NCBI RefSeq assembly: GCF_000143415.4 | Contig: NW_003314271.1 | Span: 1,591,769 to 1,655,768, forward strand | Direction of reading: 5' to 3' | Source: Selaginella moellendorffii | Taxonomy: Eukaryota; Plantae; Lycopodiophyta | Length of the DNA: 64,000 nucleotides | Shown here: positions 3,633 through 60,665 of the stretch, in pieces | How positions within the stretch are numbered: the stretch's first letter is position 1 | How the letters are laid out: the number at the start of each line of letters is the position of its first letter | The notes under the pieces: generated by a model | The model's database searches: none | The model's input: the letters and a program-made list of their open reading frames with translations, nothing else | Told to the model about the DNA's origin: nothing | Made by a program: the position numbers and the translations under genes

Positions 3633-3645
3633 TGTTAAAAAATGC

Positions 3646-4780: not shown

Positions 4781-4830
4781 TGACAAACTTTTAATGCCTG
4801 TTGTGAGAGCAACTCCAACGATAGAGAGGG

Positions 4831-31332: not shown

Positions 31333-33171
31333 TTATCGAGCTCCATCCGAGGATCGAAAGTTGAGACGATCTCTTCCTGAGACCGAGATGGAGAATTGCC
31401 CCGAGCTCGCCAGGAGTGGAGAAGACTGTGCAGCGGGTCTCTCCAGCTGAGGGAATGCCAACACATCCATGGCACCCTCGAGCATCTTCACCACCACAGA
31501 CATCGTTGGCCGCTGCAAGGGATCCTCCTGCGTACACCATAACCCGATCCGGAGGATGTTCTCAAAGCCAGTCAAGGAGAAAGCACCACCATCCTCGGCT
31601 TTGAGCAGCCGGTCGTCCACCAAGTCCATCGAGTTTCCACTGTCCAGCTTGTTGAAAGCGGTTTGTCCGAGGAACACGACGTCCATCTGTGAGCCCGAGC
31701 CCGAGGAACACTCCACGGCCTTCATGCCGCAAACGAGCTCGAGAAGGACGACCCCAAAGCTATAGACGTCAGTCTTGTCCGTGACTCGAGAGTGGAGCCA
31801 CTCGGGAGCCATGTATCCCACCGTGCCTCGCATGACCGTCACGACGTGACTCTCGTCCTTGTCGATGAGCTTGGAGAACCCAAAGTCGGCGATCTTGGCG
31901 CCCATCTTCTCGTCCAGGAGGATGTTCTGGGGCTTGATGTCCAGATGGAGTATCTTCTCGCGGCATCCTTCGTGGAGATAGGCGAGCCCCCGGGCAACGT
32001 CGAGCGCGATGGAGAGCCTGGATGCCCAAGGCAGGGAGCTGTCCTTGGCGAAGATCCAGCTATCCAGCGAGCCATTGGGGAGGAACTCGTAGACGAGCAA
32101 ATTCTGTGGAGAGTGGAGGCAAAATCCAACCATCTTGACGAGATTGAGGTGGTGAATGCTGCCGATCGACATCACCTCCGCCTTGAATTGCTTGTCCCTC
32201 TGCCGCACTCCACCTCCGATCCTCTTGACTGCCACAATCTCCCCGCCCGGCAACGTTCCCTTGAACACACTCGCAAATCCTCCTTGTCCCACCTTGCTCT
32301 GGAATCCCTTGGTCGCTCGATACACCTCCTGGTACCTGAATTGCCGCGGCAAATCCGCGAGATTGCCGAGATCGAGCGGCCGCTCCCTGACGGCAGCATC
32401 GGAAGAGCGTCGCAAGAACTTCCACCACACTAGCCCTAGGAGCGCCAGGACGACGATCGCTCCACTGGAAACCACGGCAATGGCGATATTGCGATCTCTC
32501 GTGCTGGAATCCTCGCGCTTCCAGCTCCAAGTGACCGCCAACACATTATCAAAGTAGGTTTGCCCCAGCGCTTCCCACACGGCTCTCGTCCCTCCCAGCG
32601 ATCTGGGCGAGCACGGCCCATAGAATCCAGTGTCTGCGGTACACCCGATGTTCGATCCACACTGGTCGATCACTGTCGCCGTCACGCTCAGCCCATTCTC
32701 CGCCGTGATCACGATCTCTCTGTGGCACGACGATCCATTGGCGAACCACCCCGTGGACATGGACGCCAGGAGCTCCGAATTCCTTGGCGGCGTCGAGCGA
32801 TTGCAACTCGTAGGGGACTCCTCCAGCTCGATGAAGTAGAATGCCGCGAAATTGCGAGGCTGTTCTTGCGGCGAGCAATTGAAGAACTGGTAGGTGGTGT
32901 TGTCGAAGCAAAGTGCTGGGTTGTGGGCGGTGGCATTCGAGTAGACGAAGGTCTGGGCGGGCTCGCAGCCGGGAATGGGGCAGGAAAGAGTGCTAGCTGA
33001 TGGATCGCCATCGCAGGTCTTACTAATAGGATTGCAAACGAGGCCGCCAGAACAATCGCGCGTAGACTCGCATGTCATGCCGCAGGAGGAGGAGAATTGT
33101 TGCGCGGTGGCCCCGGCGAGTGAAGAGATCAAGATCATCGCGAGCGCGAAGAAAGTGGTGCGATGCTCCAT
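31333..33171 (-). CDS. Receptor-like kinase type A1: signal peptide + kissper-like + kiwellin ectodomain + TM + non-RD Ser/Thr kinase; intronless
   Basis: ATG at 33171 (MEHRTTFF). Kissper-like CGMTCESTRDCSGGLVCNPISKTCDGDP...C; kiwellin motifs YQFFNCSP, MSTGWFANGSSC, NGLSVTATVIDQC, GPC...RAVWEALG, VTWS; TM IAIAVVSSGAIVVLALLGLVWW; kinase [36 protein letters not shown]. Confidence 0.92.
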   Translation of the reverse strand: MEHRTTFFALAMILISSLAGATAQQFSSSCGMTCESTRDCSGGLVCNPISKTCDGDPSASTLSCPIPGCEPAQTFVYSNATAHNPALCFDNTTYQFFNCSPQEQPRNFAAFYFIELEESPTSCNRSTPPRNSELLASMSTGWFANGSSCHREIVITAENGLSVTATVIDQCGSNIGCTADTGFYGPCSPRSLGGTRAVWEALGQTYFDNVLAVTWSWKREDSSTRDRNIAIAVVSSGAIVVLALLGLVWWKFLRRSSDAAVRERPLDLGNLADLPRQFRYQEVYRATKGFQSKVGQGGFASVFKGTLPGGEIVAVKRIGGGVRQRDKQFKAEVMSIGSIHHLNLVKMVGFCLHSPQNLLVYEFLPNGSLDSWIFAKDSSLPWASRLSIALDVARGLAYLHEGCREKILHLDIKPQNILLDEKMGAKIADFGFSKLIDKDESHVVTVMRGTVGYMAPEWLHSRVTDKTDVYSFGVVLLELVCGMKAVECSSGSGSQMDVVFLGQTAFNKLDSGNSMDLVDDRLLKAEDGGAFSLTGFENILRIGLWCTQEDPLQRPTMSVVVKMLEGAMDVLAFPQLERPAAQSSPLLASSGQFSISVSGRDRLNFRSSDGAR

Positions 33172-33462
33172 GGCTGGAGCTTGAGATGCAAGACCTGGAC
33201 CTGAAGATGCCAACTCTCGCGGGTAAGTTAGTTTAAAAGCTCTATCTAAAAGTCAATGAAAAGCTTTAAGAATTGGAACTGCTATATGAACCTTCCAGGT
33301 ATTCTTGTTTGACTTTTCTTGCTTGCCATCAGGATACTGCCAAGCTTCACACTAAACATGACCATAGAAAAAGCACTGATGCGACTTCTCTGATCTCTTT
33401 TATTTGATGTTTTGATCATATAATTCCATGGTCGTCGCTATGAACAGTGGTCGTCTGCAGCT
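33172..33462. promoter_or_regulatory. 291-bp divergent (bidirectional) promoter between RLK A1 and B1, with two W-boxes
   Basis: Start codons point outward; AGTCAA at 33251 and TTGACT at 33309; TATA-like CTATATG at ~33282. Confidence 0.6.
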
Positions 33463-35403
33463 ATGGAGGTACTCCTGTGCTTCATCATCGTCCTAGCGTG
33501 TAGCGCAAAGAGCTTCCACTACTCGCAAGCCCAACAACAGGTATGTTCTTCGTCGACCGATTGCCCAAATGGATCCCTTTGTTTCCCGGAGCCCATGCTC
33601 GGCGGCAACCGTTCACTCCAAAACTCGTCCTGCTACCAATCGAGCAATCGATCCGAGCCATACCTTAGCGATTCCGACGTTTGCCAGCCCAGTTCCAGCT
33701 TTGTTTTCAATGACACCATCGCTCCAGACTGCCCGAATTGCTGCGTCCCAGGCCTGGCTTACAGGACTTTCACTTGCTCTCCAATTTTTCAAGAGACCAA
33801 CAATGCCGTCCTATATGTCACAAGATTCAATCTCTCAAGTCCGGGTTCTCTCAGGTCGTGCACGTCCTTCGGGTGGGATTTTGATCTCATGGCGGCGGTG
33901 GCCACTGGGTGGTATAACCAAGACCGAAGCTTGTGCTCCACGAATATCCAAGTTTTAGCTCCAAATGGACGAACTGTGGTGGCCAGGGTCGTGGCTCAAT
34001 GCTACTCCGGGGGAGGGTGTCTCAGCGATTTTTCGTTCACGGAGCCCTGTGCTCCAAATGCCGTGGCAGCGAACGAGCAAGTGTGGAGGCAGCTTGGGTA
34101 TGATCCAGGCATTGGAATCGTAAAAAATATCACCTGGAGTATCACTACTAACAGTAATCCTCCACAGTCACCGTCTCCAAGACGCATGAACCGCAACTTG
34201 GGGTTAATTGCTGGCATAGTGAGTGCTGTGGTGGTGGTGTTGGTTAGTGTCGCAGCCTTCATAGCAACCAGGCGATGGAGGAGATCTCTTGAGAGACGAA
34301 GAAAAGATGAGCAAGCGCTCATGGATGGAATGAGGCTCGATAAGTTACTTCCACACCAGTTTAGCTATCACGACTTGAGAGCAGCGACTGGAAGCTTTGC
34401 TCCACAGTTCATGCTCGGAGCTGGTGGATTTGGATCCGTCTTTAAGGGGGAGCTTGCAGATGGAAGCCTGGTTGCTGTCAAGAAAATGGATGTAGAGATC
34501 GAAGGCTCTACACAAGGACAGTCACAGTTTAAGGCCGAGGTGATGTCCATTGGAAGCATCCATCACTTCAACTTGGTAAGGCTCCGGGGATTTTGCATCC
34601 AGGGACCAGCTGCATTGCTTGTCTACGAGTTTATGCCCAATGGCTCATTGGACAAGTGGATCTTCACCAAATACGATGATGGCAAAGCTGGCGGAATCCT
34701 GCTGGACTGGAACCAGAGACACTCAATCGCGATAGATGTTGCTCGAGGACTCACGTATCTCCACGAGGGATGCCGGGAGCAAGTTCTTCACCTGGACATC
34801 AAGCCGCAAAACATCCTCCTGGACGAGAACTTGCGAGCCAGGATCTCCGACTTTGGCCTGAGCAAGCTCGCCGAGCGAGGAAAGAGTCAGGTGGTGACTG
34901 TCATGCGAGGAACTCCCGGATACATGGCACCCGAGTGGCTCCATACCAAAGTCACGGACAAGACCGACGTCTACAGCTTTGGAATTGTGCTGCTTGAGCT
35001 CGTAAGCTCCAAGCGGGCCTTGGAATTTCATCCTTTGACATCCTCCTCCTCCTCCTCCTCCTCACAACCGACAGTGCACTTCCTGGGTACAGCCGCATTG
35101 AGCATGTTTTACAGTGGCAAAGTTGTGGAGCTCATTGACGACAAGCTCTTTGTCAATAATCTAAACGACGATATCGCCAGCAGCAGTGGCTTGGATTTCA
35201 AGGATGCCGAGAGATACCTGAAGATTGGATTGTGGTGTATCCAAGCCGAACCAGCAATGCGACCCTCTATGAGAAACGTATTGGATATGCTTGACGGTAG
35301 CGTAGATGTTCTTGAGTTGCCACCACCTTCAAGTGATGGTAGTTCGAGAAACTTTAGCTTGCGACCACCTGAATCCTCTAACTTCAGCTCCACCAGTTTG
35401 TAA
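33463..35403 (+). CDS. Receptor-like kinase type B1: kiwellin ectodomain + TM + non-RD Ser/Thr kinase; intronless, 646 aa
   Basis: Signal peptide; kiwellin pattern CQPS...DCPNCCVPGLAYRTFTCSP, AVATGWY...C, NGRTVVARVVAQC, EPCAPNAVAANEQVWRQLG, ITWS; TM; kinase [27 protein letters not shown]. Confidence 0.93.
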   Translation: MEVLLCFIIVLACSAKSFHYSQAQQQVCSSSTDCPNGSLCFPEPMLGGNRSLQNSSCYQSSNRSEPYLSDSDVCQPSSSFVFNDTIAPDCPNCCVPGLAYRTFTCSPIFQETNNAVLYVTRFNLSSPGSLRSCTSFGWDFDLMAAVATGWYNQDRSLCSTNIQVLAPNGRTVVARVVAQCYSGGGCLSDFSFTEPCAPNAVAANEQVWRQLGYDPGIGIVKNITWSITTNSNPPQSPSPRRMNRNLGLIAGIVSAVVVVLVSVAAFIATRRWRRSLERRRKDEQALMDGMRLDKLLPHQFSYHDLRAATGSFAPQFMLGAGGFGSVFKGELADGSLVAVKKMDVEIEGSTQGQSQFKAEVMSIGSIHHFNLVRLRGFCIQGPAALLVYEFMPNGSLDKWIFTKYDDGKAGGILLDWNQRHSIAIDVARGLTYLHEGCREQVLHLDIKPQNILLDENLRARISDFGLSKLAERGKSQVVTVMRGTPGYMAPEWLHTKVTDKTDVYSFGIVLLELVSSKRALEFHPLTSSSSSSSSQPTVHFLGTAALSMFYSGKVVELIDDKLFVNNLNDDIASSSGLDFKDAERYLKIGLWCIQAEPAMRPSMRNVLDMLDGSVDVLELPPPSSDGSSRNFSLRPPESSNFSSTSL

Positions 35404-35553
35404 TGTTACACCACTATATTGAAACTCTGAAACGTCCCACAAGAAATATCTCTGGAAAAGCAATCAGCTTCATTGTAAATTAGTTGTGAAAACCAACTTA
35501 GTGTCACAGTCTGGGTGGTGTAGTTGGTCATCACGCTAGTCTCACACACTAGA

Positions 35554-35630
35554 AGTCAACCCGGGCACGAGCATTTTTCGATATGGTGCCGTGTCGAAGC
35601 CAAATCCGCGTAGTCAAAAAGACGTTGACT
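35554..35630. promoter_or_regulatory. Cluster of three W-boxes upstream of the BSP/PR-17 gene
   Basis: AGTCAA at 35554 and 35612 and TTGACT at 35625, 80-160 bp upstream of ATG 35712. Confidence 0.6.
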
Positions 35631-35711
35631 TCGTAGCCATAACCGCGTACAAACACTTCATAAACCCCTTCACGAGCCTTCTTCAGACGATATTGATTTT
35701 TGCGATCAACA

Positions 35712-36428
35712 ATGACGCAAACTTGTCTGAGAGTTTCCACTGCACGTCTTTTGAGCTGCTTGTCCCTTGTTCTCGTTATCACGTCCCGTGTCCATGCAGA
35801 CATTGTCCTGGTCGGAGCAAACAATGCCGAGGACACCGACGGTGGCAAGCGCTTCAACTCGGTGATGGGGATCTCCGGGGCCTTCAAAGTCCTGGGCGAT
35901 GCAATCAACTTCATCCCGCCGCTGTTGCACTATGGTCTCGACGGTGTTCCCACAAAACTAGTGACCAAGGTTGTCTTCACGGTCGAGAAGCAGCTCCAGC
36001 AGGGTGCGGTTGCGATCACATTTGGGACGGGCAGTCCCGGCGAGTTCCAGATCCAGTTTAATGCTCCATCTGCCGATAACTACGAGGGGATCAAAGGGGT
36101 AATATACCACGAGATGGCTCACGTTTGGCAGTACTTTGGGCAAGGAACTCCCAGTGGAGTGACTGAAGGAGTGGCTGATTATGTCCGGCTCAAAGCCGGG
36201 CTCGCTCCATCTCACTGGGTGAAGCCGGGCGGTGGTGATCGCTGGGACCAGGGCTACGATGTTACTGCCTATTTCTTTGATTACTGCAATAGCCTCCGTG
36301 GAGATTTTGTGTGGCAGATGAATGCGAGGCTTGCAAATGGTGCGTGGAGTGAGTCTGTGTTCAGTGATTTGCTTGGAAAGAGCGTACAGGATTTGTGGAC
36401 TGACTACAAGAACAAATACGGTGGGTAA
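35712..36428 (+). CDS. Plant basic secretory protein (BSP / PR-17 family), intronless
   Basis: Signal peptide; GVIYHEMAHVWQ (HExxH), EGVADYVRLKAG, HWVKPGGGDRWDQGYDVTAYF and LGKSVQDLWTDYK. Confidence 0.95.
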   Translation: MTQTCLRVSTARLLSCLSLVLVITSRVHADIVLVGANNAEDTDGGKRFNSVMGISGAFKVLGDAINFIPPLLHYGLDGVPTKLVTKVVFTVEKQLQQGAVAITFGTGSPGEFQIQFNAPSADNYEGIKGVIYHEMAHVWQYFGQGTPSGVTEGVADYVRLKAGLAPSHWVKPGGGDRWDQGYDVTAYFFDYCNSLRGDFVWQMNARLANGAWSESVFSDLLGKSVQDLWTDYKNKYGG

Positions 36429-36629
36429 TTAAAACAGTATTTGGTTAGAAACAAATTCTCTTATGCTTTACTAAAAAGAAAATAAGTATTTTTTATCTTG
36501 CACAAGCATTTCTACCACCTCCAAGAGTTGGCTATGGAATAAATTCTTCTTGCAAAGTTTCCTTGTTTGTAAAAGCGCCTTCTTAGCGAGCCAAGTCTGA
36601 GATACAGATTTATACTCCTGAATTTGCAC

Positions 36630-37300
36630 TGCTGCTCATGAGGAGGGACGAAGCCTGTGCAGCAGGTCTCTCCAGCAGGTCTCTCCAGCTGAGGGAACGC
36701 CACATGGCACCCTCGAGAATCTTCATCACAACTGGTCGCTGCAAGGGATCCTCCTCATCATAGCCCGATCCGGACGGTACTCGAAAGCCACTCAGAAAGA
36801 AACCATCCTCGGCTTTGAGCAGTTGGTCGTAGACTACGGAGTTTCCATTGTGGAGCTTGTTGAAAGCGGTCTTCCATCTGCGAGTCCGAGTCCAAGGAAC
36901 ACTCCACGGCCTTTATGCTGCAAACACCAGGAGGACGATTCCAAAGCTATAGCATCGTGGAGTGCCGCTTGTCGCGAATCCCAGCACACTTCAGGTTGGA
37001 ACCAAAGATTCCACCATACCCCACGGGTTTTGGAACACGTCGGTCTCGTCCGTGACACGAGAATGGAGCCACTCGGAGCCATGTATCCCACCGTCACAAC
37101 GTGAGTCTTGTCCTTGTCGATGAGCTTCGAGAATCCAAAGTCGGCGGGCGCCCATGTGGTGCCCATCTTCTTATCCAGCAGGACGTTCTGGGGCTTGATG
37201 TCTAGATGGAGTTGGCATCCTTCGTGAAGATATGTGAGCCAACGTCGAGCGCGATGAAGAGCCTGGATTCCCAAGCCAGGCACTTGTCCTTAGCGAATCC
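36630..37300 (-). pseudogene. Decayed kinase half of a type A RLK
   Basis: [46 protein letters not shown]; nucleotide similarity to 39850-40470 with many deletions and frameshifts. Confidence 0.88.
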
Positions 37301-38019
37301 AGCGAGTACTTCCAATAGAGCACACCCTTTCAAAAAGGTCTTTAAAATTTTATTATGCAGCTTAAATGACTTTGCTAATCAAATTTTAAACACTCTTCTT
37401 CCTTTTCTCCAGTTGTTGTGCTTAAATCGATTGATGCTCCTTTAGTTGCTACCATTCTCGCTATTGTTGCTCTTAATGCTGCCTTGTTATTTACATTTCT
37501 GCTTTTTCATACTAAACTCTTTTCTTTTCCCTTTAGACTCCATTTCAAAACCTTTAAACCCTATTTGTGAAATATTTTGTAAGTCAATAAAAACTTTCAA
37601 GGCTTTGAACTCAGTCGTAATGTATAACAGTTTTAATTGAAGTAAAAAAATTTGATTTAACAATCACTCACTTCCATAGCATTATGAAAGATATATTCTT
37701 CTTCTTTATCACTTTGGGCCATCACTTTAGCGGGAGAGGGGGGTTCTGAGAGCTCAATCTTTCTGTAGGTGAGGGGAATCTGCCCATCAAGAAGGCTACA
37801 TAGATCTCTTCCTTAATAAATTTTTTATCAAGCCCCCACCCACCCCAAAATTCCTACTGCTCACGACATAGAAGAAGACTGTGTTCATCTCTCTACCCCT
37901 CTTTTTCTCTTTCTAGTTCCTTCTAACCTTAAGAAGGATGGGATTTGTTGTGACACTTTATCATTGTGTTGCTCTTCCTCCTCTTCTTTATCCCCATACT
38001 GGCACTAGAATGTTGTATG

Positions 38020-38876
38020 TAGTCGACAAGCATGAAACCGCAGGGAAAATGGATTTAGCAAGCTCGAGCTAAAGCCAGACCACAAGAAGAGACCACTCTG
38101 GGTTGGACCTGATGGCCATATCTTTCTCAAGACGTTTTCTCCGCTACACAAGCAAGCATACGGCTTTCTCATTGTGACTGCCGAGCCTGTGTGTTAGTAA
38201 GCTTCAGGTCTTGCTGATATGGAGAAGTTTTTACACTCAAGTATTTTCTTTGAAACGTTGTTCCAGGCCAGAACATATGCATGAGTACAATCTCACACCA
38301 CATCCTTTGTATCCGGCTGTCTCCGTTGGTCTTGAGACTCAGATAGTCATTACGGTGATGGAATGGCTGTCGAAAGCAAGGCTCCTGCAGAAGATTGTGA
38401 ATTTCATCAAAGAGTCGACTCTGAACTATGGCAAAGTAAAACTAGTTCTGAAAAAGAATCGTTATTTTGTAGAATCTTCTTATCCAGAGGTATGGTGCAA
38501 CTTTGATTGGTGAAACTTACTCTCTGTCATGCAGATTCTGGAGAGGGTTTTAAAGGATAATGTCATCTCTCGAGCCAGAATTTTATGGGAGGCATTTGAA
38601 AGTTTTTCTTTCAAATCCTGTCTAGCTTTCTCACTGCAAAATCTTCTAGGCAAGTGCAGAGCACGGTTTTATGATCAACAAGTCATTGTCCAATAGAACA
38701 AGACTTGCTTGCCGGGGATGAAGTCACTGCTGAGGATGTGATGTGTTTTGAAGTAACTATTCATGTATTGGTTAAGTACACATGAACTTTTCAGGTAGAA
38801 CATGTGAAGCAGAGGTGCCTGCCAAGTGCTTTAAACTATCTGATGTTTGAGGAATGCGACTTTAGAAATGATTCGG
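38020..38876 (+). pseudogene. 5' fragment of a TFIIH helicase XPB gene, introns retained
   Basis: [15 protein letters not shown]...[65 protein letters not shown] and VEHVKQRCLPSALNY..FRNDS; in-frame stop at ~38195; no helicase core follows. Confidence 0.85.
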
Positions 38877-39820
38877 TAATTTCATAATATTTGTTACCTT
38901 TTTCCTAAGCATTGAATTGAGTAGTGCCTCCAGAGCCATGTGAAAAAGAGCGGAAGATAGGTGATTTTTAGCCATGAATTTGAATGCAGCACTGCTGGCT
39001 GTAGAATTCTTCCATGACCTAGCTTTTACAGGAGCCATGCTTGCCGTGGACGCGGAAAGAACTAGCATACCTGCGAGCCCGCCCGCGCGACAGCGCGCTG
39101 AGAATCCCGTCCGCCATCCTTGGCGCCCGAGTCCAAACCCAAACAAGACAACACTACTCAAAACACACTCAGCCAATATTCTTCCTCAATAGTCTAGGAT
39201 CCACTTTCTCTTCTGATAAAGGTTGTTTGTCATTATTGTTTTTTGTGTTTTATATATAAATGAAAGTTAGATAGATAAATAACTGTTGGGGACCACAAAG
39301 GTATCTCCTGCACAAATATGCTCCGGTCAATACATTTATTTTGGAGCCGAGGTAATAGATTGCGTCTGATAGCATGTGATTTCCCAGCTTGTGGGAGGTG
39401 AATTAAATAGTCATTCCTAGCGAGCCAAGTCCGAGACTAAGGCTGCTGCTCACCAGGAGTGATAGAAAACCATTCAGCACCAAATGGTTTTCACACAAAA
39501 CCAAGCATGGGCGGATACAAGCTCCTCCGGCATCACCATTGCGTGCAATAGCAGCACTGCATTCAATTCACGGCTAAAAGTCACCAATCTCCTGTGCTCT
39601 TTTTCGCTTGCATGGTTCTGGGATTCTCAGTATGGATTTGGCCAGCCGAATGGTTTTTAGATTGAAATCCATGGAGCTTGGTTGCATGTAATAGTGGATA
39701 AACACAATGAGTGTTTTGATACTTATACAGCTATATAAAATGGTATATTTGTCAATTTTGCAAAAAATAGTGAACATCAAACCTTTTGATTTCTCATTGA
39801 AAATATATGTAAACGAAAGT

Positions 39821-41587
39821 TTATCCCTCGCTACTGCTCACCAGGAGCGACGAATCCTGTGCACCGGTTCTCTCCAGCTGAGGCAACGCCAACACATCCA
39901 TGGCACCCTCGAGCATCTTCACCACCACAGACATCGTTGGTCGCTGCAAGGGATCCTCCTGCGCACACCATAGCCCGATCCGAACGATGTTCTCGAAGCC
40001 ACTCAAGGAGAAACCACCACCGTCCTCGGCTTTGACCAGCCGATCGTCCACCAAGTCCATGGCATTTCCACTGTGGAGCTTGTTAAAAGCAGTCTGGGTG
40101 AGGAACGCGACGTCCATCTGCGAGTCCGAGTCCAAGGAACACTCCACGGCCTTTATGCTGCAAACAAGCTCCAGGAGGACGATTCCAAAGCTATAGACGT
40201 CCGTCTTGTCCGTGACACGAGAGTGGAGCCACTCGGGAGCCATGTATCCCACCGTGCCCCTCACGACGGTCACTACGTGAGTCTTCTCCTTGTCGATGAG
40301 CTTGGAGAATCCAAAATCGGCGATCTTGGCCCCCATCTTCTCGTCCAAGAGGATGTTCTGGGGCTTGATGTCTAGATGGAGTACCTTCTCGCGGCATCCT
40401 TCGTGGAGATATGTGAGCCCCCGGGCAACGTCGAGCGCGATGGAGAGCCTGGATCCCCAGGACAGGCATTTCTCCTTGGCAAAAATCCATCCATCTAGCG
40501 AGCCATTCGGGAGGAACTCGTAGACGAGCAAGTTGTGTGGAGAATGCAGGCAAAATCCAACCATCTTGACGAGATTGAGGTGATGGATGCTGCCAATCGA
40601 CATCACCTCCGCCTTGAATTGCTTGTCTCTCTGCCGCACTCCACCTCCGATCCTCTTGACTGCCACAATCTCCCCGCCCGGCAACGTTCCCTTGAACACA
40701 CTCGCAAATCCTCCCTGTCCCACCTTGCTCTGGAATCCCCTGGTCGCTCGATACACCTCCTGGTACCTGAATTGCCGCGGCAAATCCGCGAGATTGCCGA
40801 GATCGAGCGGCCGTTCCCTGACGGCAGCATTGGAAGATCGTCGCAAGAACTTCCACCACACTAGCCCTATGAGCGCCAGGACGACGATCGCTCCACTGGA
40901 AACCACGGGAATGATGATATTGCGATCTCTCGCGTTGGAATCCTCGCCCTTCCAGCTCCAAGTGACCGCCAACACATTATCAAAGTAGGTCTGCCCCAGC
41001 GCTTCCCACACGGCTCTCGTCCCTCCCAGCGATCTGGGTGAGCACGGCACATAGAATCCAGTGTCTGCGGTACACCCGATCATCGAGTTGCATTCTCCCG
41101 CGACCGTCGCCGTCACGCTCAGCCCATTCTCCGCGGTGATTACAATCTCTTTGAAGCACGACGATCCATTGGCAAACCATCCGGTCGCCATGTTTGCCAG
41201 GAGCTCCGAGTTCTTGTAAGGCCTGGATCGATTGCATGCCGTGGGGATTCCCTCCAGCTCGATGAAGTATAAAGCCGCGAAGTTGAGAGGCTGCTCTCTG
41301 GGCGAGCAATTGAAGAACTGGTAGGTGTTGTTCCCGACGCAATACTCGGGATCGTGGGCGGTGGTATTCGAGTAGACGAAGGTCTGGGCGGGCTTGCAGC
41401 CTGAAATTGGGCAGGAAAGGGTGCTCGCTGATGGATCGCCATCGCAGGTCTTGCTAACAGGATTGCAAACGAGCCCGCCAGAACACCCGGAATCGCATCT
41501 CCTGCCGCAAGAGGAGGAAAATTGCTGCGCGGTGGCGCTGGCGAGTGAAGAGATCAAGATCATCAAGAGAGTGCTGCCACGATCCAT
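39821..41587 (-). CDS. Receptor-like kinase type A2: kissper-like + kiwellin ectodomain + TM + non-RD kinase; intronless, 588 aa
   Basis: Close paralog of 31333-33171 with all domains intact and a shorter C-tail. Confidence 0.92.
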   Translation of the reverse strand: MDRGSTLLMILISSLASATAQQFSSSCGRRCDSGCSGGLVCNPVSKTCDGDPSASTLSCPISGCKPAQTFVYSNTTAHDPEYCVGNNTYQFFNCSPREQPLNFAALYFIELEGIPTACNRSRPYKNSELLANMATGWFANGSSCFKEIVITAENGLSVTATVAGECNSMIGCTADTGFYVPCSPRSLGGTRAVWEALGQTYFDNVLAVTWSWKGEDSNARDRNIIIPVVSSGAIVVLALIGLVWWKFLRRSSNAAVRERPLDLGNLADLPRQFRYQEVYRATRGFQSKVGQGGFASVFKGTLPGGEIVAVKRIGGGVRQRDKQFKAEVMSIGSIHHLNLVKMVGFCLHSPHNLLVYEFLPNGSLDGWIFAKEKCLSWGSRLSIALDVARGLTYLHEGCREKVLHLDIKPQNILLDEKMGAKIADFGFSKLIDKEKTHVVTVVRGTVGYMAPEWLHSRVTDKTDVYSFGIVLLELVCSIKAVECSLDSDSQMDVAFLTQTAFNKLHSGNAMDLVDDRLVKAEDGGGFSLSGFENIVRIGLWCAQEDPLQRPTMSVVVKMLEGAMDVLALPQLERTGAQDSSLLVSSSEG

Positions 41588-42554
41588 GGCTGGAATTGGA
41601 GATGCAAAACACCGGTGGTAAATTGGTTTAAAAGCTCTAGAAAAAGTTGACCTCGTGCATGCCGAGTTAGACTTTTCAAGATCGAACTCAGAAAGATTTT
41701 ATCTTTGAGAAATAAAAAATTAAGTTATGTGAGTTTATTAATCCAGTCAAAAACTATGTTGTCTTCAGGTCCCCCCTTCAAGCTGGCCCGATCCTTCCTT
41801 GATGGTTACAGTTGGTTGTTTCCACATTACACACACTCCCCGTCTTCATTCTCTACTTATATCACCATCGTCACAAGGACTTGCCCAAGATGGATTCCTT
41901 TGTTGACAAAGCATCCCTGCTTGGAAAATTACCAAGCCAAGAAATAACAGCATTGAAAGATCAGGATTGTAGCTTGAATTGAGATGTTGCCATGTTATTA
42001 AGCTTGTGAGTGCTCAGTACCAGGAGAGTCGACACTTCCATAACCATTAAAAATGTTCTAATCTGAATACATTATAGTCAAGTATCTTCAAGAATGGTAC
42101 CACCAAGAAGAAGAGTGTGAAGGCATATGCCAATATAAACACTTTGTATTATCACTCTGGTATTTTTGTATGTAGTGACATTTTTGTGGTCCCTTGAAAA
42201 ACTTCTTTAGAAGGACCCTAAGCGACAAAGCAGACGTAAGATGCCACGTGGCGGAGAGAGAGAAGAGAGAGAGAGAGAGAGTTGCAAGGGACCAACAATG
42301 CCGTCCTTTATGTCACAAGCTTCAACTTCTCAAATCCAGGCCGTGCACATCCTCACAATGGAATATGAAACCCATGGCAGCGAGATGGTATAGCCAAGAC
42401 CGAATCTTGTGCTCGACAAACATCCAAGTTTTAGCTCCAAACAGACGGATGCGGTGGTCAGAATGGTGGCTGACTGCTACTCCCCAGACGGGTGATCATT
42501 CGTTCACGGAGCCCTGTGCTCCAAATGCGAACGAGCAAGTGTGGAGGCAGCTTG

Positions 42555-42770
42555 TGTTAGGATGTGAATCCAATCAAAAAAGATGTGATCCATTAATGAG
42601 TGATTCACATGAGAAACAAGAGAGGAGAAAAGGCACAAGGCCTGGAAGAAGAAGAAGAGAACAACAAAACCTAGCCTCCCCCTTTGCGCCAGTCGGTCCA
42701 TATATGTTTCGTACAGATCCCCTGTCGTCCCGCATCCGTACTAGTTATGAGCCAAGAATAGCTCATAACA
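42555..42770 (-). repeat. 3' LTR (216 bp)
   Basis: Direct repeat of 46238-46434; preceded on the minus strand by the PPT ...agtggggggtaa. Confidence 0.95.
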
Positions 42771-45700
42771 TTACCCCCCACTTTGAAAAGCTCTATCCTC
42801 AGAGCTGGCTGGTAACACAGGATCCCACTAAAACAGGTGCACCAGACGATCGAACTCCTGTTGAGAAAGCCAGGTATCTGCATCCCCCCCAGTGTTCATC
42901 CAGCAAACCAGATAACGCTTAATCATCCATCAACGCAGCTGGCGAGTCTCCACATCAATCACCTTATTTGGCACAACCAGATGCTAGTCCCCCAACGATC
43001 GGACTGGAACTTCCACTGTCGGCAAGGGAGTAGGACCATAATGCAACTTGAGCTCGGAAACGTGGAACACATCATGGAGCTTGCACCCTTGCGGAAGAGC
43101 CAGCCGAAATGCCACCTCATTGATCCTTTCAACCACCTGAAAAGGACCGAAGTAGCGTTGAGTCAGCTTGGATCGAGAGCCCACTCGGCGGCCTAGAGTG
43201 TGAAGAACTTGATGTACACCAGGTCGCCAATAACGAATGTTCGAAAACTCCGATGCTTGTCAACTTGAAGCTTCATGGTTGCACAAGCTGCCTCCAACCT
43301 GCTATGAACTTGTTGATGCAACTCTCGAATGGTCTCCAGATGTCCAGAAACTGTCACCTCTGGGACCGGAAGTGCGGGAGCTGGCCAATGTAGGATTCGA
43401 CGCCCATAGAGAATCTCCAAAGGAGCAAACCTTGTAGCAGAATGACAGGCCGAATTATATGCGAATTCCGCATATGGGAGCCAGTGCAGCCATGATGTAG
43501 GATGATCCAGTGTGTATCCCCTGAGAAATACCTCTATTGTCTGGTTGGTTTGTTCTGCTTGCCCATCCGATTGGGGGTGATATGCTGAACTGAAGCTGAG
43601 CTTGGTCCCAAGAGCTGAAAAAAGGTGACGCCAGAATGAGCTGAGGAACTTCGGATCCCGGTCAGAAACAATCTCCCGAGGCAGGCCATGGAGACAAATC
43701 ACTTCTCGAGAAAATAACTCGGCTATCCTTGCTGCAGACACCGAAATTGTTGTAGGTAGAAACTGAGCTGTCTTGCTGAAACGGTCAACCACCACCATTA
43801 TCATGTCTTTTCTCTGGCAACGAGGTAGACCCCCCACAAAGTCCATTGAAATGCTAGTAAAGGGACCATCTGCAACTGGTAATGGCTAGAGAAGACCTGG
43901 AGAAGCCACTGTCTCTGTCTTTACCACCTGACATACTGGACATTCTCGAATCCACGCCTTCACTTCTCGCTGCATGCCTTTCCAAACAAAGCGAAGCTTG
44001 ATTGCTGCCAATGTTGCTGCCACCCCTGGATGTCCAGCGAGAATTCCCTGATGACACTCATGGAAAATTTCTTGCTGCAATGGATGCTTGTTGTTGAGAA
44101 ACACCCGTCCCTTTGACCAGAGAATGCCATCAATGAGGACCAGCTTGGGATGCTGCTCCCCATTCTGAAGCTGTTCTAGAATCTGTTGAAGGGCCACATC
44201 TTGCGCGTACCCCTCCCGAATTTGCTCTATGTACTCTGGTTGAAGGCAAGAAATCCCATAGAGAGCTGATTCCTCGGTGCATGCAAACTTCTGTGAGAGA
44301 GCATCTGGAAGCACATTGGAAGCACCTAGTCGATACTCGATAGTGAAGTCGAAGGCTTGAAGTTCTTCCACCCAACGCATCTGCTTCTTGTTGAGGTGGG
44401 GTTGAGTGAGCAAAAAGCTTCAGCTGTGATAAACTCCGCCAACCGCCGATTCACAAATGTGTGTGAAGCGCCAGAGTCAACCAGTCCGAATGCCACTCTG
44501 CCATTAATTGTTCCTTGCACCCGGAAACACTGCGGACCAGTCTTTCCAAAATATGCTGAGCAGGAGATAAATGCCTTGCCACCTGAACTGTCAGGGTCCT
44601 CCAAGCCCGGGCTGTTGTTCCCTGATTCCCAAACAAAGATCTCCTCACTCTCATCAACCATGTCCATGTCGACTGGAACAAATTCCCCAGAAGCAGCCTT
44701 GCGAAAATGTAGCATCGCCACCTTTGCCTTGGGAACTGTAGCACCCTTCTGAGATGGACAAAACAAATGGTGGCCTCGTGTCCATTTCTGCCCACAATCA
44801 AAGCATTTGCCTAGCTTCAAATCCTTTGAGCGTTTGGCCCGTTCCTGAGTGGATAAATCTCGCCAAGGCTTGCGTTCCTTATCACTGTTCACTGTCGGCA
44901 ACACTGTCGGCATAGGGGTCGGTGATGCAGCTGGGAAATCCTGACAATGAAGCCTGCTTATATAAGGACGACGCAATTGAGACTCCCATTCACGAAACCG
45001 CTGGTCTGCATTCAATGCTGCCACCATTGCCTAACGCACAGAAACTGGTTTGGTTTGAGCGACATCACCTGCCATTGATGAAGGCAGCGCTGCTACGTAA
45101 CGCTGGGCCAAAATCTCGTCTGAAACTCCCACTACCTCATATCTGGCCCATAACTATGCTGTATTGAATGCCTGGAGAGTTTGATGTTGCCAGTCATAGC
45201 GAAGGTCGCACAACTTGTTGAAGGGCAGCTCCAAAACTGGGGTCAAGATGAAAGTGTCTGTGATCAAGACTTTGAACTATTCCCAGTCTGGGAATATGCG
45301 AGCTCGTTCCAAGTTATGAAACCACTCAGATGCCAGATCCTTCAAGAAGATTGATGCAAAAGGGAACCTTATCCACCCCCTTGGTATCTCGCCACACAAA
45401 ACACCACTCCAGCTTGTGGAGCCAATCTTGAAGTCTTAGTTGATCATTTGAGCCATCGTACTCCAGTATATTGAGCTTCTCCCGATCCTGCCACCGTGAT
45501 CCCATCCCTGGACCCCTCCCGAGTATCCCCTTGGTCCCTCCTTCCGGAACTGGTGACTTCATCTTCTCCAGCAAGTCATCATACCAAGGTCGATCACCTG
45601 TTGGGGGTAATTCAGGGCTCGAATCTTGGAACCAATCTTCGTCAGAAAACCGGTGCACGATATCTTTCAAATTAGGGTCTCCTCGATCCTTGACCCTAGA

Positions 45701-46237
45701 CCCCATTTGTTCTTGCTTCTCTGCCAAAACCCACTGCTGCTCTCCCAACTCCTCTATCTTGCCACCCATAGTAGCCTGATTGTGCTCGATGATGGCCAAG
45801 GTACGCTGCAATTGTTGGAACCTCTCTAAGTCCTACTGATGATTCGTCACATAGCACTGCATGAAAGACTGCAACACCTCCCTCAACTCACCAACCAGCT
45901 CAGGCACTACCTGTGGAGAATTCACTAGATCGACCACCTCAACATTGCTGGATTCTCCATCGGCTGAAGGGGAAGATTTCACCTCTTTTCTTCCCTTGTT
46001 CCATGGTGGCATTGCTTCTTTCCGGTGCCTCACTCTTGCCCAAGCCCAGATCACCCACGACAGCCTAGGGTAAATGATCGCCGCCGCAATCACCTCCCGT
46101 CGGATACCCTGCTGAGACAGCTGTACCCTAGATTGGGCGAATGCCGTGGTGCTAAGGATGTGGACCAATCCTCTCTCCCACGATGCAATATCCCAAATGA
46201 TCTTTGCCAAGGTCCTGATCAATGCTCCAATACCAAA

Positions 46238-46434
46238 TGTTAGGATGTGAATCCAATCAAAAAAGATGTGATCTTAATGAGTGAAACAAGAGAGGAGAAA
46301 AGGCACAAGGCCAAGAAGAAGAGAACAACAAAACCTAGCCTCCCCCTTTGCGCCAGTCGGTCCATATATGTCTCGTACGGATCCCCCGTCGTCCCGCATC
46401 CGTACTAGTTATGAGCCAAGAATAGCTCATAACA
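46238..46434 (-). repeat. 5' LTR (197 bp)
   Basis: Differs from the other LTR by 3 transitions and indels of 2, 11 and 6 bp; followed on the minus strand by the PBS. Confidence 0.95.
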
Positions 46435-47696
46435 GCCAGGCATTGGAATCTTACCTGGAATGTCACTGATAGTAATCTTCCACAGTCAATTCGAAGCAAA
46501 AAAAATTATCTGGGAGTGATCGCTGGGGTAGCAAGCGCTGTGGCGGGGGTGGAGAAGCAACCAGGAAGTGGAGAAGATCTAATGGAAAAGCAAGCGCTCA
46601 TCGAAGGAATGAAGCTCGATGAGATACTTCCGCACCAGTTTAGCTATGACGACTTGAAGATGGCAACTAGAAATCCCGAGCTCATGCTTGGAGCTTGAGG
46701 ATTTGGATCCGTCTTCAAAGGAGAGCTTGCGGACGTTGCTGTGAAGAAGATGGACGTAGAGATCCAAGGCTCGTCGAAAGGACACTCGCAGTTCAAGGCC
46801 GAGGTGATGCACTTCAACCTGGTAAAGCTCCGGGGCTTTTGCATCCAGGGACCAGCCGCATTGCTTGTCTACGAGTTCATGCTCAATGGATCACTGGACA
46901 AGTTGAGGCTTGACATCCAAGTGATCCCGGCAATCCTTCGTGGAGGTATGTGAGTCCTCGAGCAACATCTATCGCAGCAGATTTGCTGATCCGCCACCTT
47001 TGTTATCATCGTTCTCGGTGAAGATCCACCTGGACGAGAACTACTTTGGCCTGAGCAAGCTCAAGCCAGGTGGTGACTGTCATGCGAGGAACTCCCGGAT
47101 ACATGGCACCCGAGTGGCTCCACACCAAAGTCACGGACAAGACCGACGCCTACAGCTTTGGAATCGTGCTGCTCGATCCAAGCGCACCGTCCAGTTCCAT
47201 CCTCAATCATCCTCTTCCTCCTCATCCCCCTCACCCGCGGTTCCTGGGCGAAACCGCGCTGAGCATGTTTCACAGTGGTAACGTCGTCGAGCTCATTGAC
47301 GATCTCGCCAGCATAGCAGTGGCTTGGAGCTCAAGGACGCCGAGAGGTACGTGAAAATCGGACTGTGGTGCATCCGAGCCGAGGCTGCAATCCGCCCCTC
47401 TATGAGAAACGATATGCTCGGAAGTAGCGTCGACGTTCTAGACTTGCACCTTCAAGTGAGTAGCTCCAGAAGCTTCAGCTTGCGACTACCTGGATCCTAC
47501 TTCAGCTCCACTAGTCTGTGATGTTACCCTCTAGATACCGCCATGATCATCAAGACCGAGATAGAGTCTCGCAAGTGTTGACGTTATATTGGCAGAGGAG
47601 AGTCACTCCCTTCTTCCGATCTTCGAAGTATTTCTCTCTACTTCTAGCCAGCGGGAACGAGGAAGCATACCCGGAGACGATATATATTTCAAAGAA

Positions 47697-50541
47697 TCAA
47701 GGGTCTTCGTCCGCACCACCATCAGCCTCACAAAATCTGAAGTTGGGCTCTACGTTCATTGCCCACGCGAATTTGGCCAGCAATGACTTATTAAAAACCT
47801 GTGATCCAAATCTCCTGCCTCAGTAAGAGAAATAAAAGAAATGAAAGTAAGAAGTGCCTGGTTACCTTCTCAATGGGAATTTCGTGACGCTTGCACCAAG
47901 CGACCGTTATTCGAGGATCCATGTAGTTGATCTTTGACGTTCCCAGCGCCACGGTTTTGAGATCTTCTTTAACGGACAGATCCAAGGTCATCTTCGCTAT
48001 CCTTGCATCAGTTTGAGCCAACTTCTTTTCCAACCTGGATTTTACATGAATAGTCAGTATCATAAAAGTAGAAACATAAAAATCATCTACTTACTGTTCT
48101 GCGGTTGGAGGCCTTTTAGCCGTGCTGTGGACTGGGGGTTTGCCCTTTTTAACTTTCCCCAAGTCTGTTGCAAGTTCCTCACGCAATGTCTGCCAATAGC
48201 AAAGCGTCAGCCTCAAACAAACCATAAAGAAAAACAGACCTTTAACTCTGCAATCTTTGCCTCCAATCTTTCCATCTGAGCACTATGGCCCTTGGATACT
48301 GTCCGTTGATGATTACATAGAATCGCGACCTGTCAACAAGATTCATAAGTGCTAACCAAACAGAATGTTCTCTTACCTCCTTATTTGCTCGGGAGTATTC
48401 TGCAGTTTTCTCGTTAAGAGTCGCACCAAGCGTCTCCTTCAACTGTAACAAGTAATGCGTCGGATCATTTTGGCCTTGACAAAGCAAAAGTCGCAAACCT
48501 GGGTCTCCAAAGTATATGACGCATTATACGTTCGAAACACCTTCGCTGTTAGACCTTGCATGTACTTCTTCAGATGGGCATTAAGCTTAGAAGTATCTAA
48601 CCTATCAAAGAGGTCAACCCCTTCCTTTTTCCCTGTGTAACAAACAGCTCATCTCAACGAGGACAACACAAGTCACAACATACCTTTCTTGAAATCGTGT
48701 ATAGCGTCGTATACCTCTTCGTTTACAACCACAGAGTTTTGGTACCTGATGGAGTCTTTACCCAGAAAATCGAACTGTAAATATGCGAACCATAGATCAC
48801 AAAACAACAGTCTCAAGTCCTCAACAAAGCACCTCAAGCGAGTTCGGAGGGGAAAGAGAGACGTGCTCCACTTTCAACGAGCAGCAGCCAACCGTATCAG
48901 CTTCATCGTCATCCTGAAATCAAAATGTCAATTCACAGGCACGAAAACGACACACTTTCCACCTTTTCGTTTCCTGCTCTCAGAGCAAGCCTATCAATAA
49001 GATACGTGGCCACCGCAATCTGCCGTGCTTCCACATCCTTCTCTTTAAAATCCTTTGTGTAAGATTCCCGTATGCTATCAATCTGACAAGAAATGAAGAT
49101 TAGAAAAGAAACGAAAACGCCTGCTTACTTTTGACGTAAGCTTCCTAGCCTTATCGTATTTCTCCTCATCGCTCTTGCCCTTCAAACTACTACTTTGATG
49201 CAAAAACACGTACTTAAACTCCTTCACATTGATCGGGTCGTTCCAAAACGCAAGCCAGGTAACGGTGTTATCGTGTCTGACTTCCTTCCACCTGCGGTAA
49301 GCAAAGTTAAGTTAGCCTAACAAGATAAGAATCATGTAATGAACACTTACTTGTGACCAGGAAGTGGACACTCTGGAACTGGTGCTTCTTTTCCAATGTT
49401 GAGTACAATGTCTTCAGGAAAAATGCGCCGTTTCAGCTTTCCCATCTAAACGACCATGGTGTGAAGCTTACAAACAAACTGAAGCTTAAGTACCTTGGGA
49501 TGCTCGCCGCGGCCCCGGAAAAGGCCAGGAGGCTCCACTCTAAAATTTCCAACCTGTTGGCACGAGTTACAGTAAGAAAACTGCCATGAGGTGGAAAGAA
49601 AAGAAGTAACCCCGCCTTCTCTTTGACACCATCGATCAGAACCCATGCATAACGTTCTTCTGCTTTCGCCTTCTCCTCTTTCAGTTGCTTTTTCTCCTGC
49701 AGAAAGAAGTGAGACAAACACATAATCCACGGACGAACACACCTCTGCACTCATTTGCTTCTTCTTCTCTTTCTCCGCGGCATGCCAGTCGAAAATAGGA
49801 GTGAAGTCGCACAGCTCAAGCTTCTGGATGACGTGCTTTGGACCAAGAACTTTCTTCCAGTCCTCCCAAAAGTTCTTGACAAAGACGGGCTTGGTTGCGT
49901 AGTCAGTGTCTTTCATCACGGCAAACATCGTCGCGATCTGCAAGACCAGCTACAATTAAACGAAGAAAGCGAAACAAAGAGCTAAAAACCTCCTCTTCTT
50001 CTGGTGTAAGATCGATTGGCCGACCATTGTAGAGCATCTTCACTCCATGCGGGCTATACGGCGGGGGAAAGAGCACGCCATTGTGCTCCAGCGTCGTCCA
50101 TTTTGGCTCAGCAACACTCCCCTTTCTGGGTTTCTTGCTCCTAGCCTTCCCCTTCGTCACTCCCTTCTTCCCTGGCTTCGCACTATCGCCCCCAAAACGC
50201 TTCCCAATGGGAACGTCCTCGTCCTCGTCTTCGTCATCCTCCTCCTCACTCTCCTCATCGCTGGAGCTCACCTCGACTTTGGATTTCTTGGAAATGCCAT
50301 TGGCGGACGCTGGCGCGGGCCTCTTCCTCCCGCTGGCGTTGGAATCGGCGGAAGCCGGCGCCGCCGCCACCGATCCATCCTTGGAGGAGCTGGCGTGCTG
50401 CTCCGCTCCGGGATTGCGCGCTCTCGCGGAAAAGATGCGCCGGGCGAGGGGGACGTCGTCCTCGTCGTCCGAATCCTTGGCTGGATTGGCCTTCTTGAAG
50501 CGCGCCGCGAGCGGCACGTCGTCCTCGGAGGAGGAATCCAT
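47697..50541 (-). CDS. TOP1: DNA topoisomerase I (type IB), multi-exon
   Basis: [66 protein letters not shown], catalytic [13 protein letters not shown]; last exon [14 protein letters not shown]. Confidence 0.96.
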
Positions 50542-53854: not shown

Positions 53855-54600
53855 AAATCCTGGATCGCCATCACAAGTATTGCCATCACAATCTAGAGAA
53901 GGCGGATCAGCAAGTCTGGACATCAAGCCGCTCCAGGACGAGAACTCCCGGATACGTGGCCGAGTGGCTCCACACAAGTCACGGACAAGACCGTCAGCTC
54001 CAAGCGCACTGTCGAGTTTCATCCTCCATCTTCCTCGTACGACGATCTCGCAGCGCTAACAGTGGCTTGGAGTGAGAGGTACGTGAAAATCGGACTGTGG
54101 TGCATCCAGCCTGAGGCAGCAATCCGACTCTCCATGAGAAACGTCCAGGAATTCTTGATCAATTGATCACTTCAATGTTGTCGCAAGCTGAAGGTTTGGA
54201 GATACCATCATGATGCTAGCTCCAAAACCTTCAGCTTGCAACTACCTGGAAGCTCCAGCTCTCACAGTGAGATCATGGATCATCGAGACCGAGATAGGAG
54301 TCTCACAAGTGTTGACATTATATAGGCACGGAGACGGTATATATTTCAAAGAATCAACGGTCATTGTCCGCCTCACAATATCTGACTCTATGTTCATTCC
54401 CAACGCGAATTTGGCCAGCAATGACTTAGTGAAAACCTGTGATCCAAGCCTCAGTCCTTTTCAATGGTAGCTTGCACCAAGCGACAATTAATCAAGGATC
54501 CATGTAGTTGACTTTTTACGCCAAGACACCCCAACCACAAAGTTTCTTAAATTAAAAAACTGTCTCAAGTCCTCAGGAAAGAGAGATGTGCTCCACACTC
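53855..54600 (+). pseudogene. Heavily deleted relic of a type B RLK 3' end plus TOP1 3' end (copy of the ~46900-48900 region)
   Basis: ctggacatcaagccg, gagtggctccacac..gtcacggacaagaccg and gagaggtacgtgaaaatcggactgtggtgcatcc, then the RLK-TOP1 spacer and TOP1 pieces (cgcgaatttggccagcaatgactta, ggatccatgtagttga) in the same order. Confidence 0.85.
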
Positions 54601-57577: not shown

Positions 57578-57839
57578 TGCGATGGATTTCCGCCCCCACG
57601 CCGCCGCGCTAATCCCTCAGGCCGCTACCCCTGGAATCCCTCGGACTGGCGCCGGAGCTCCCAGATCAGACGCGCGCCGCGGAGAATCGGTCGCGGCTCC
57701 CCATCCCGGCGCTAGATCTAGCCCTAATCACTGGTAGGCTATGGCGGAGAAAAAGTCCAGCCCTTTCGTATTTTAACAGCATCGCAAATCGTGGCCGTCC
57801 ATCACATCTGGCCGTTGATCTAACGGCTCCCAGGGAGTT

Positions 57840-60665
<2,826 letters not shown>

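Follow-up and report, generated by a model that had tools for sequence, protein, structure and literature searches.

Results

The window, the whole 64,000-nucleotide stretch of Selaginella moellendorffii DNA that was analysed, contains two intact receptor-kinase genes in back-to-back orientation, A1 and B1 (unit U1):

31333..33171, minus strand: A1, intact intronless type-A receptor kinase with a kiwellin ectodomain, 612 aa (open reading frame and translation; Pfam KWL1 and Pkinase)
33172..33462, no strand: divergent spacer from the A1 ATG to the B1 ATG, exactly 291 bp (spacer alignment)
33463..35403, plus strand: B1, intact intronless type-B receptor kinase with a kiwellin ectodomain, 646 aa (open reading frame and translation; Pfam KWL1 and Pkinase; ATG at 33463)

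A1 runs on the minus strand from an ATG at 33171 to a stop codon at 31333-31335 and is identical to a protein on record (P0001). The A1 and B1 proteins share 41-42% identity. The first-pass annotation had described two strongly diverged genes lying back to back and 291 bp apart, which holds: both reading frames are intact and positions 33172-33462 separate their start codons. RefSeq model P0025 erroneously fuses B1 with the 3′ piece of a second, decayed type-B gene (B2, see below). No transcript contigs with exact B1, or with exact sequence of the second type-A gene (A2), were on record.

The A-proximal side of the U1 spacer carries a block, GGTAA.T..GTTTAAAAGCTCTA, that the spacer alignment found conserved in all young units, and TTTAAA occurs at a distance of 27-61 nt from the start codon of A in U1, in the second unit (U2) and at three other loci (L001, L002 and L007). 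W-box counts were uninformative (0-2 per spacer, with a background of 0.86 per kb). A spacer this short may act as a bidirectional promoter, and A and B would hence tend toward co-expression.

Protein architecture

KWL1 (PF24300) matched A1, B1 and A2 with 71.6, 76.2 and 72.2 bits, all exceeding the 27-bit gathering score, with E-values of 1e-20 to 1e-21 for the ectodomains of A and B; the corresponding Pkinase E-values were 3e-44, 3e-43 and 1e-43. K316, E332, H409-L-D411, D429-F-G431 and A455-P-E457 were invariant in a nine-sequence alignment, and the catalytic core (VAVK Lys, alpha-C Glu, HxD, DFG, APE) is complete in both types, which the catalytic loop marks as non-RD kinases. As read from the translations, the N-terminus is hydrophobic in all three proteins, and a single hydrophobic stretch precedes the kinase. 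A and B are alike in predicted architecture: a putative signal peptide, a kiwellin ectodomain, a putative transmembrane helix and a non-RD, SD-2b-like kinase. A domain search of the A and B proteins gave KWL1 and kinase domains only, with neither NB-ARC nor LRR.

The closest kinase domains belong to angiosperm and Selaginella G-type lectin SD2-5 kinases (45-52% identity). The six-cysteine, kissper-like N-terminus is kept in A and partly missing in B. Ectodomains evolve faster than kinases, at similar dN/dS in the two types (0.34-0.45 in A, 0.38-0.42 in B).

The second unit

Downstream of B1 lie a second unit, U2, and a further type-A fragment:

36579..37297, minus strand: A3, type-A 3′ fragment (kinase C-lobe and tail), nearest to A2 (tblastn/blastn; 88% identical to A2 over 576 nt)
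39821..41587, minus strand: A2, intact type-A gene, 588 aa (open reading frame only; ATG at 41587, stop at 39821)
40613..41094, minus strand: gene-conversion tract in A2 (A2 nt 494-975, ~480 bp), source A1, 95-98% identical to A1
41588..41686, no strand: A2-proximal spacer, homologous to other units, with the conserved A promoter block kept (spacer alignment)
41687..42281, no strand: unrelated 0.6 kb where the promoter side of B and its first ~108 codons would be expected (similarity search)
42282..42557, plus strand: B2 pseudogene, piece 1 (B codons ~109-212; sequence matches)
42555..46434, minus strand: defective LTR retroelement, 3.9 kb, inside B2 (LTRs at 42555-~42772 and 46238-46434)
46436..46906, plus strand: B2 pseudogene, piece 2 (sequence matches)
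46907..47042, minus strand: B2 segment of ~130 bp, in opposite orientation to all other B copies (matches B1 and the L001 B on the minus strand)
47043..47536, plus strand: B2 pseudogene, piece 3 (sequence matches)

The facing arrangement previously noted here, A2 on the minus strand with its ATG at 41587 opposite a decayed B2 on the plus strand, was confirmed: the A2 reading frame is intact, and B2 is truncated, split by the LTR element and partly inverted. The remnant had been placed from ~42340 to 47520; its end was about right, and its start lies about 60 bp earlier, at 42282. We found no full-length annotated protein for A2.

A2 is 89% identical to A1 at nucleotide level and about 85% at protein level. 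Its conversion tract runs from the end of the ectodomain through the transmembrane helix and juxtamembrane region into the beginning of the kinase; informative sites divide 74 vs 6 inside the tract and 46 vs 103 outside it, and none of 500 permutations reached the observed maximum chi-square of 79.3.

The retroelement in B2 has LTRs with TG..CA ends that are about 90% alike, and protease and integrase reading frames on the minus strand; no reverse transcriptase was found in it. U1 and U2 are homologous in the two genes and in the roughly 100 bp of spacer nearest A; the 0.6 kb at 41687..42281 resembles none of the other units or loci compared. With its pieces joined at nucleotide level only, B2 shares 93-94% identity with young B copies and 83% with B1.

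The collinear scaffold

From 47043 onward, the window is 94% identical to scaffold GL377594.1 (L001) for more than 10 kb. Decay there is opposite to that in U2: the A copy is dead, with five or more frameshifts, and the B copy is intact. The same scaffold bears allele-like copies of A1 and B1 (A1′ and B1′; 96.0% and 97.4% identical, compared as proteins only), the latter being P0267. Intact genes number one A and two B on the collinear scaffold, vs two A and one B in the window. The S. moellendorffii assembly is presumably a mix of two haplotypes, which we take to be roughly 98% identical; the GL377594.1 flanks are lower, at 94%. By these comparisons, GL377594.1 would be either the other haplotype or a large duplicate.

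Copies at other loci

A divergent A/B unit, whole or decayed, was present at four of the five other loci examined, the fifth having lost A. The head-to-head layout with a short spacer is conserved in the window and at these four loci, with ATG-to-ATG gaps of 259-1,149 bp: 290 bp at L001, 387 bp at L004/L005, 259 bp at L007 and 1,149 bp at L002, whose spacer contains a duplicated part. B is kept and A lost at L007; A is kept and B truncated at L002. The old units, U1 and the pair on GL377634.1, have both genes intact, on two scaffolds each. Dispersed copies end at a common point near window position 48802-48811, inside a topoisomerase I gene. We rejected L001, L002, L003 and L007 as plain alleles of one another because their mutual identity is 83-97%.

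All copies are common by descent, and repeats of the head-to-head layout are therefore not independent, amounting to one or two independent observations. According to the gene tables of the other loci, unrelated neighbouring genes likewise lie 137-467 bp apart; spacing of a few hundred bp is nothing unusual around A/B genes.

Phylogeny and selection

A and B fell into separate clades, the A clade including P0007 (support 97/94) and the B clade including P0016 (support 100/99). As judged from this tree, they are two old paralogous Selaginella receptor-kinase lineages. The A/B split precedes the split of the window locus from the distant pair on GL377634.1; the unit is therefore ancient and was copied whole. 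Reconstructed in this way, segmental duplication has since copied the whole unit at least three times. The A and B trees are congruent in the deep node and in the division of U1 from the young clade, with a single discordance, the position of A2 near A1, which arises because of the conversion tract. B2 groups with the younger dispersed B clade (179 vs 29 informative sites). Synonymous divergence (dS) was 0.385 between A1 and the L002 A, and 0.42-0.45 between B1 and the B copies of L001 and L007, similar divergence for the two genes and consistent with the tree.

The duplication of the pair as a unit, proposed in the first-pass annotation, thus stands and extends more widely and further back in time, to four of five other loci and to an A/B split that predates the locus split. 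Its reading of U2 as a duplicate of U1 needs amending, as U2 is no plain tandem copy: B2 belongs to the younger clade and A2 is a mosaic.

On the branch leading to A2 alone, synonymous and non-synonymous changes number 18 each (ratio approximately 0.16). The counts are 26 and 22 for the L001 B, whose neighbour is dead, and 7 and 23 for the truncated L002 B. By these branch counts, genes with a dead neighbour (A2 and the L001 B) are still under purifying selection, and such persistence of lone partners argues against a strict need for a cis neighbour.

Discussion

To judge from the loci compared, the two-gene A/B unit is real and of old origin, and whole copies of it have arisen several times, often followed by the loss of one partner. 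We hold the following structural and evolutionary account with good confidence. A divergent two-gene unit with a spacer of 260-390 bp is older than the split between the window and GL377634.1 loci. The window combines an old complete unit, A1/B1, with a member of a younger dispersed set, A2/B2, that carries part of the adjacent topoisomerase I gene along with it and undergoes birth-and-death evolution. B2 was destroyed in the window by loss of its 5′ end, LTR insertion and inversion; A2 remained intact, and gene conversion brought about 480 bp of A1 sequence into it. The counterpart A on the collinear scaffold is frameshifted, and the B there is intact. It is very improbable that U2 is an assembly or annotation artefact, such as haplotypes collapsed into a false tandem. 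The assumed mixture of haplotypes in the assembly and the misjoined model P0025 would fit such an error, but divergence is 11% between A1 and A2 and 17% between B1 and B2, well beyond that of alleles; U2 has flanks of its own, collinear with GL377594.1 at 94%; and the allele-like A1 and B1 copies are located on another scaffold.

Chances seem evenly balanced that adjacency has no functional meaning, one ancient inverted duplication having made A and B as independent receptors, each acting as a homodimer or with unrelated co-receptors; every later duplication would then take both genes because the spacer is so short. The frequent loss of one partner with the survivor under purifying selection, the equally close spacing of unrelated neighbours and the common architecture with complete kinase motifs all fit, as does a kiwellin receptor kinase of apparently separate origin, found in an angiosperm assembly, which has no head-to-head partner within 10 kb. 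Such independence accords less well with the intact old units and with the retention of both lineages since the split that left 41-42% identity. A functional A-B receptor complex is possible, if somewhat doubtful: the two proteins may cooperate at the membrane, in which case the partner need not be the cis neighbour. It is unlikely that they form a heteromeric cell-surface receptor as the receptor-kinase counterpart of paired NLRs, with the second pair kept only in trans. If true, the trans pair would join A2 from the window chromosome with the intact B from the collinear scaffold and, if those two scaffolds are haplotypes, would make a complementary, heterozygote-dependent receptor pair.

An NLR-style sensor/executor pair, as first proposed, is not supported by what the genes encode. 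Such a division of labour, with A as variable sensor and B as conserved executor, would let one B serve several A and make B2 dispensable; the divergent orientation, the short shared spacer, the two intact A and one intact B of the window and the N-terminal cysteines kept more fully in A are in its favour. Nevertheless, we consider it improbable: A and B are receptor kinases of the same architecture with all catalytic motifs in both, neither is a pseudokinase, and their ectodomain dN/dS values are alike, leaving no sensor/helper asymmetry in these respects. The suggestion that one B serves two A sensors is likewise not supported, as the collinear scaffold has the reverse count; L007 has kept B and lost A, the opposite of L002.

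Genetically paired immune receptors are well documented among intracellular NLRs. Like A/B, the head-to-head pairs RRS1/RPS4, RGA4/RGA5, Pik-1/Pik-2 and CHS3/CSA1 are diverged paralogues in divergent orientation, with a spacer of a few hundred bp, inherited as a unit. In contrast, A and B are cell-surface receptor kinases without NB-ARC, neither has an integrated domain absent from the other, motifs and evolutionary rates lack sensor/helper asymmetry, and single partners are lost while the one that remains shows no decay. Our literature search found no paper on a conserved head-to-head receptor-kinase pair or on any kiwellin-ectodomain kinase. If A and B do cooperate, this lycophyte family would show paired-gene architecture arising independently in cell-surface immunity, and the half-dead units (A only, B only, both) would offer natural material on partner dependence. 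If they do not, the locus would still be a clean case of a two-gene unit spread by descent, with dated decay and gene conversion.

Kiwellins (PF24300 KWL1) share the ectodomain type of A/B but are small secreted proteins, whereas in A/B the domain is fused to a transmembrane helix and a kinase; the word ‘kinase’ is absent throughout a review of the kiwellin family (PMC9813671). Outside S. moellendorffii, a profile search of 1.84 billion representatives added only two full-length kiwellin kinases: L008, on a 1.8-kb metagenome contig, and L009, a singleton from assembly GCA_029747015.1. These two and L006 resemble angiosperm SD2-5 kinases and look separate in origin, and are therefore uninformative on conservation of the A/B pair. 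SD-2b/SD2-5-type receptor kinases have a similar kinase, with a B-lectin/S-domain ectodomain where A/B have kiwellin.

Heteromeric LysM receptor kinases (NFR1/NFR5, CERK1/LYK5) resemble A/B in being paralogous kinases with the same ectodomain type that possibly join in one complex. One partner of each LysM pair is a pseudokinase and the genes form no conserved head-to-head unit; in A/B, by contrast, both kinases appear competent.

Tandem receptor-like-kinase clusters (such as Xa21, CRK, lectin-RLK) evolve by birth and death and gene conversion. The A/B locus is like them in having been duplicated both locally and to dispersed sites, in its pseudogenes and inserted retroelements, in a conversion tract between adjacent paralogues and in ectodomains that change faster than kinases. 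These clusters are same-strand arrays of one lineage, whereas the A/B unit joins two old lineages in a fixed divergent arrangement.

The A/B pair of the window

The type-A and type-B genes encode receptor kinases with a kiwellin ectodomain, and three of them are intact and intronless:

31333–33171, minus strand: A1, ORF of 612 aa (ATG 33171, stop 31333)
33463–35403, plus strand: B1, ORF of 646 aa
39821–41587, minus strand: A2, intact ORF of 588 aa (ATG 41587)

As the first-pass annotation had described, A1 and B1 stand head to head, with exactly 291 bp between their start codons. A1 is identical to an annotated protein in S. moellendorffii assembly GCA_000143415.2, and every close relative is from the same species. 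In A1, B1 and A2, a match to kiwellin profile PF24300 (72–76 bits; cut-off 27 bits) precedes a protein kinase domain, and A1 and B1 share merely 41–42% protein identity. In a nine-sequence alignment, both types retained the catalytic lysine, the alpha-C glutamate, a non-RD HLD loop, DFG and APE, and neither looks like a pseudokinase.

RefSeq model XP_024528844.1 (P0025, 570 aa) is identical to B1 through residue 502, then runs on into the B2 pseudogene's 3′ piece, 12 kb off (33463–~34968 joined to 47046–47351), and looks like a chimeric gene model. About 300 bp 3′ of B1 lies a gene for a BSP-family peptidase/basic secretory protein (35700–36428, plus strand; PF04450, E 8e-51), another family commonly annotated as defence-related.

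Decay of B2

42282–42557, plus strand: B2 piece, similar to B genes
42555–~42772 and 46238–46434: retroelement LTRs, TG..CA ends, ~90% alike
46436–46906, plus strand: B2 piece, similar to B genes
46907–47042: ~130 bp of B2, in opposite orientation to all other B copies
47043–47536, plus strand: B2 piece, similar to B genes

A defective LTR retroelement fills the 3.9 kb between pieces one and two. It has protease and integrase ORFs on the minus strand; a search of it for reverse transcriptase found none, and it has no clean target-site duplication. The promoter side of B2 and its first ~108 codons would be expected at 41687–42281, where no similarity to other units was found. Homology to other units persists in the ~100 bp adjoining the A2 start codon, and this A2-proximal spacer retains a conserved block with a TTTAAA motif.

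Copies of the unit elsewhere in the genome

Five further loci, reached via their annotated proteins, were compared.

Further A/B loci of S. moellendorffii (A gene; B gene; ATG-to-ATG gap)
L001, GL377594.1: at least five indels that shift the frame, earliest stop at codon 155; intact, 635 aa; 290 bp
L002, GL377719.1: intact, 598 aa; truncated, constraint relaxed, second dead B nearby; 1,149 bp
L003, GL377627.1: lost by clean deletion; two dead copies, a different insertion interrupting one of them; none
L007, GL377585.1: earliest stop at codon 223; intact, 639 aa; 259 bp
L004/L005, GL377634.1: A-like P0007, intact; B-like P0016, intact; 387 bp

The L002 gap is wide because the A start region and spacer are tandemly duplicated (L002 8822–9150 and 9700–10090). 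The L004/L005 pair is distant (39–52% identity to A1 and B1) and is present a second time on a different scaffold (97.4% and 95.9% identity). The 3′ end of its B-like gene is 187 bp from the end of an RBOH-type NADPH oxidase gene (L004 3897–7681, plus strand; domains NADPH_Ox, Ferric_reduct, FAD-binding and NAD-binding).

From 47043 onwards the window matches L001 at 94% identity for >10 kb, and GL377594.1 also encodes, as compared at the protein level, a 612-aa protein (A1′, 96.0% to A1) and a 644-aa protein (B1′, 97.4% to B1) with accession numbers consecutive with that of the L001 B gene. GL377594.1 is therefore the window's counterpart, being the second haplotype or else a large duplicate of recent origin. 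In the second unit of GL377594.1 the decay is the other way round (A dead, B intact).

Age and ancestry of the units

The head-to-head arrangement and its duplication as a unit, proposed from the window, both hold and extend further than the window's two copies, to the other loci and to a deep node of the tree. In a maximum-likelihood tree (LG+C20, 647 columns), P0007 joined the A genes (support 97/94) and P0016 the B genes (100/99). A and B therefore diverged before the two loci did, and at this deep node the divergent pair was duplicated whole. One level below it, the two types agree in synonymous divergence (dS 0.385 for A1 versus the L002 A gene; 0.42–0.45 for B1 versus the L001 and L007 B genes), which likewise fits copying of the whole unit.

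Common to the young units are a segment downstream of A and, downstream of B, part of the topoisomerase I gene that adjoins B2 (47600–50541, minus strand), and the dispersed copies have a common end point near 48802–48811. The full topoisomerase gene occurs only in the window and L001, so the dispersed copies probably derive from the window locus.

The A2/B2 unit had been read as a recurrence of A1/B1. A2 (minus strand) does face the B2 remnants (plus strand), but in gapped alignment B2 is 93–94% identical to young B copies and only 83% to B1; at informative sites it sides with the young clade 179 to 29, and it shows no trace of mosaicism. A2 looks nearest overall to A1 (89%), but is a mosaic: nucleotides 494–975 (window 40613–41094) are 95–98% identical to A1 and 74–86% to young A copies, and the flanks group with the young A copies. 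Informative sites split 74 versus 6 in the tract and 46 versus 103 outside, giving a maximum chi-square of 79.3 that 0/500 permutations reached. Because A1 is far from the young copies within the tract, the transfer went from A1 (donor) to A2 (acceptor). The A2/B2 unit is thus no plain copy of A1/B1.

Do A and B work together?

That A and B function as a pair is an inference favoured by retention of both lineages since their ancient split, by the completeness of both old units on two scaffolds each and by the short spacer. Against a strict cis pair, and against the proposed analogy with sensor/executor NLR pairs, one partner is easily lost and the remaining one is kept under constraint. The A2 branch carries 18 synonymous and 18 non-synonymous changes (approximate ratio 0.16) and the L001 B branch 26 and 22 (0.22), in contrast to the truncated L002 B gene (7 and 23; 0.82), which indicates persisting constraint in A2 and L001 B despite a dead neighbour. 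Unrelated neighbouring genes likewise lie just 137–467 bp apart, and all copies are related by descent, so their recurrence is not independent evidence.

Symmetry and gene counts speak against the same two readings. A and B are alike in architecture and in evolutionary rate: in either type the ectodomain changes faster than the kinase domain (dN/dS 0.34–0.45 versus 0.14–0.19 in A; 0.38–0.42 versus 0.11–0.12 in B), and the types lack the asymmetry expected of a variable sensor and a conserved helper. The window's 2:1 A:B count, behind the suggestion that one B serves two A genes, is reversed on GL377594.1 (1:2).

Other features of the window

2682–4786, minus strand: two tandem alpha/beta-hydrolase genes (Abhydrolase_3, carboxylesterase-like)
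20481–22121 (minus), 50977–52668 (minus) and 56438–57712 (plus): long ORFs of 425–564 aa, no Pfam match
53972–54259, plus strand: short, weak kinase fragment, 34% to the B1 C-lobe
59141–60665, minus strand: AAA ATPase with nucleolin-binding domain, beyond the topoisomerase I gene
61090–61369, minus strand: short A-like kinase fragment, 66–70% aa identity

Kiwellin kinases outside Selaginella

A review of the kiwellin family never mentions kinases (PMC9813671), and a literature search on receptor kinases with a kiwellin domain, or on receptor-kinase genes paired head to head, brought up NLR papers only. Searching 1.84 billion representatives with a profile yielded just two more full-length kiwellin kinases beyond those of Selaginella, one on a short metagenome contig and one a singleton in assembly GCA_029747015.1 (L009); in the tree, a related contig that resembles a transcript clusters with SD2-5 kinases of angiosperms. 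These kinases look like a separate origin. At the fetched L009 locus the intronless receptor kinase (10142–11725) has no head-to-head partner. A separate kiwellin domain lies 5 kb downstream on the same strand (16355–16777), an arrangement that could represent the raw material of an independent fusion.
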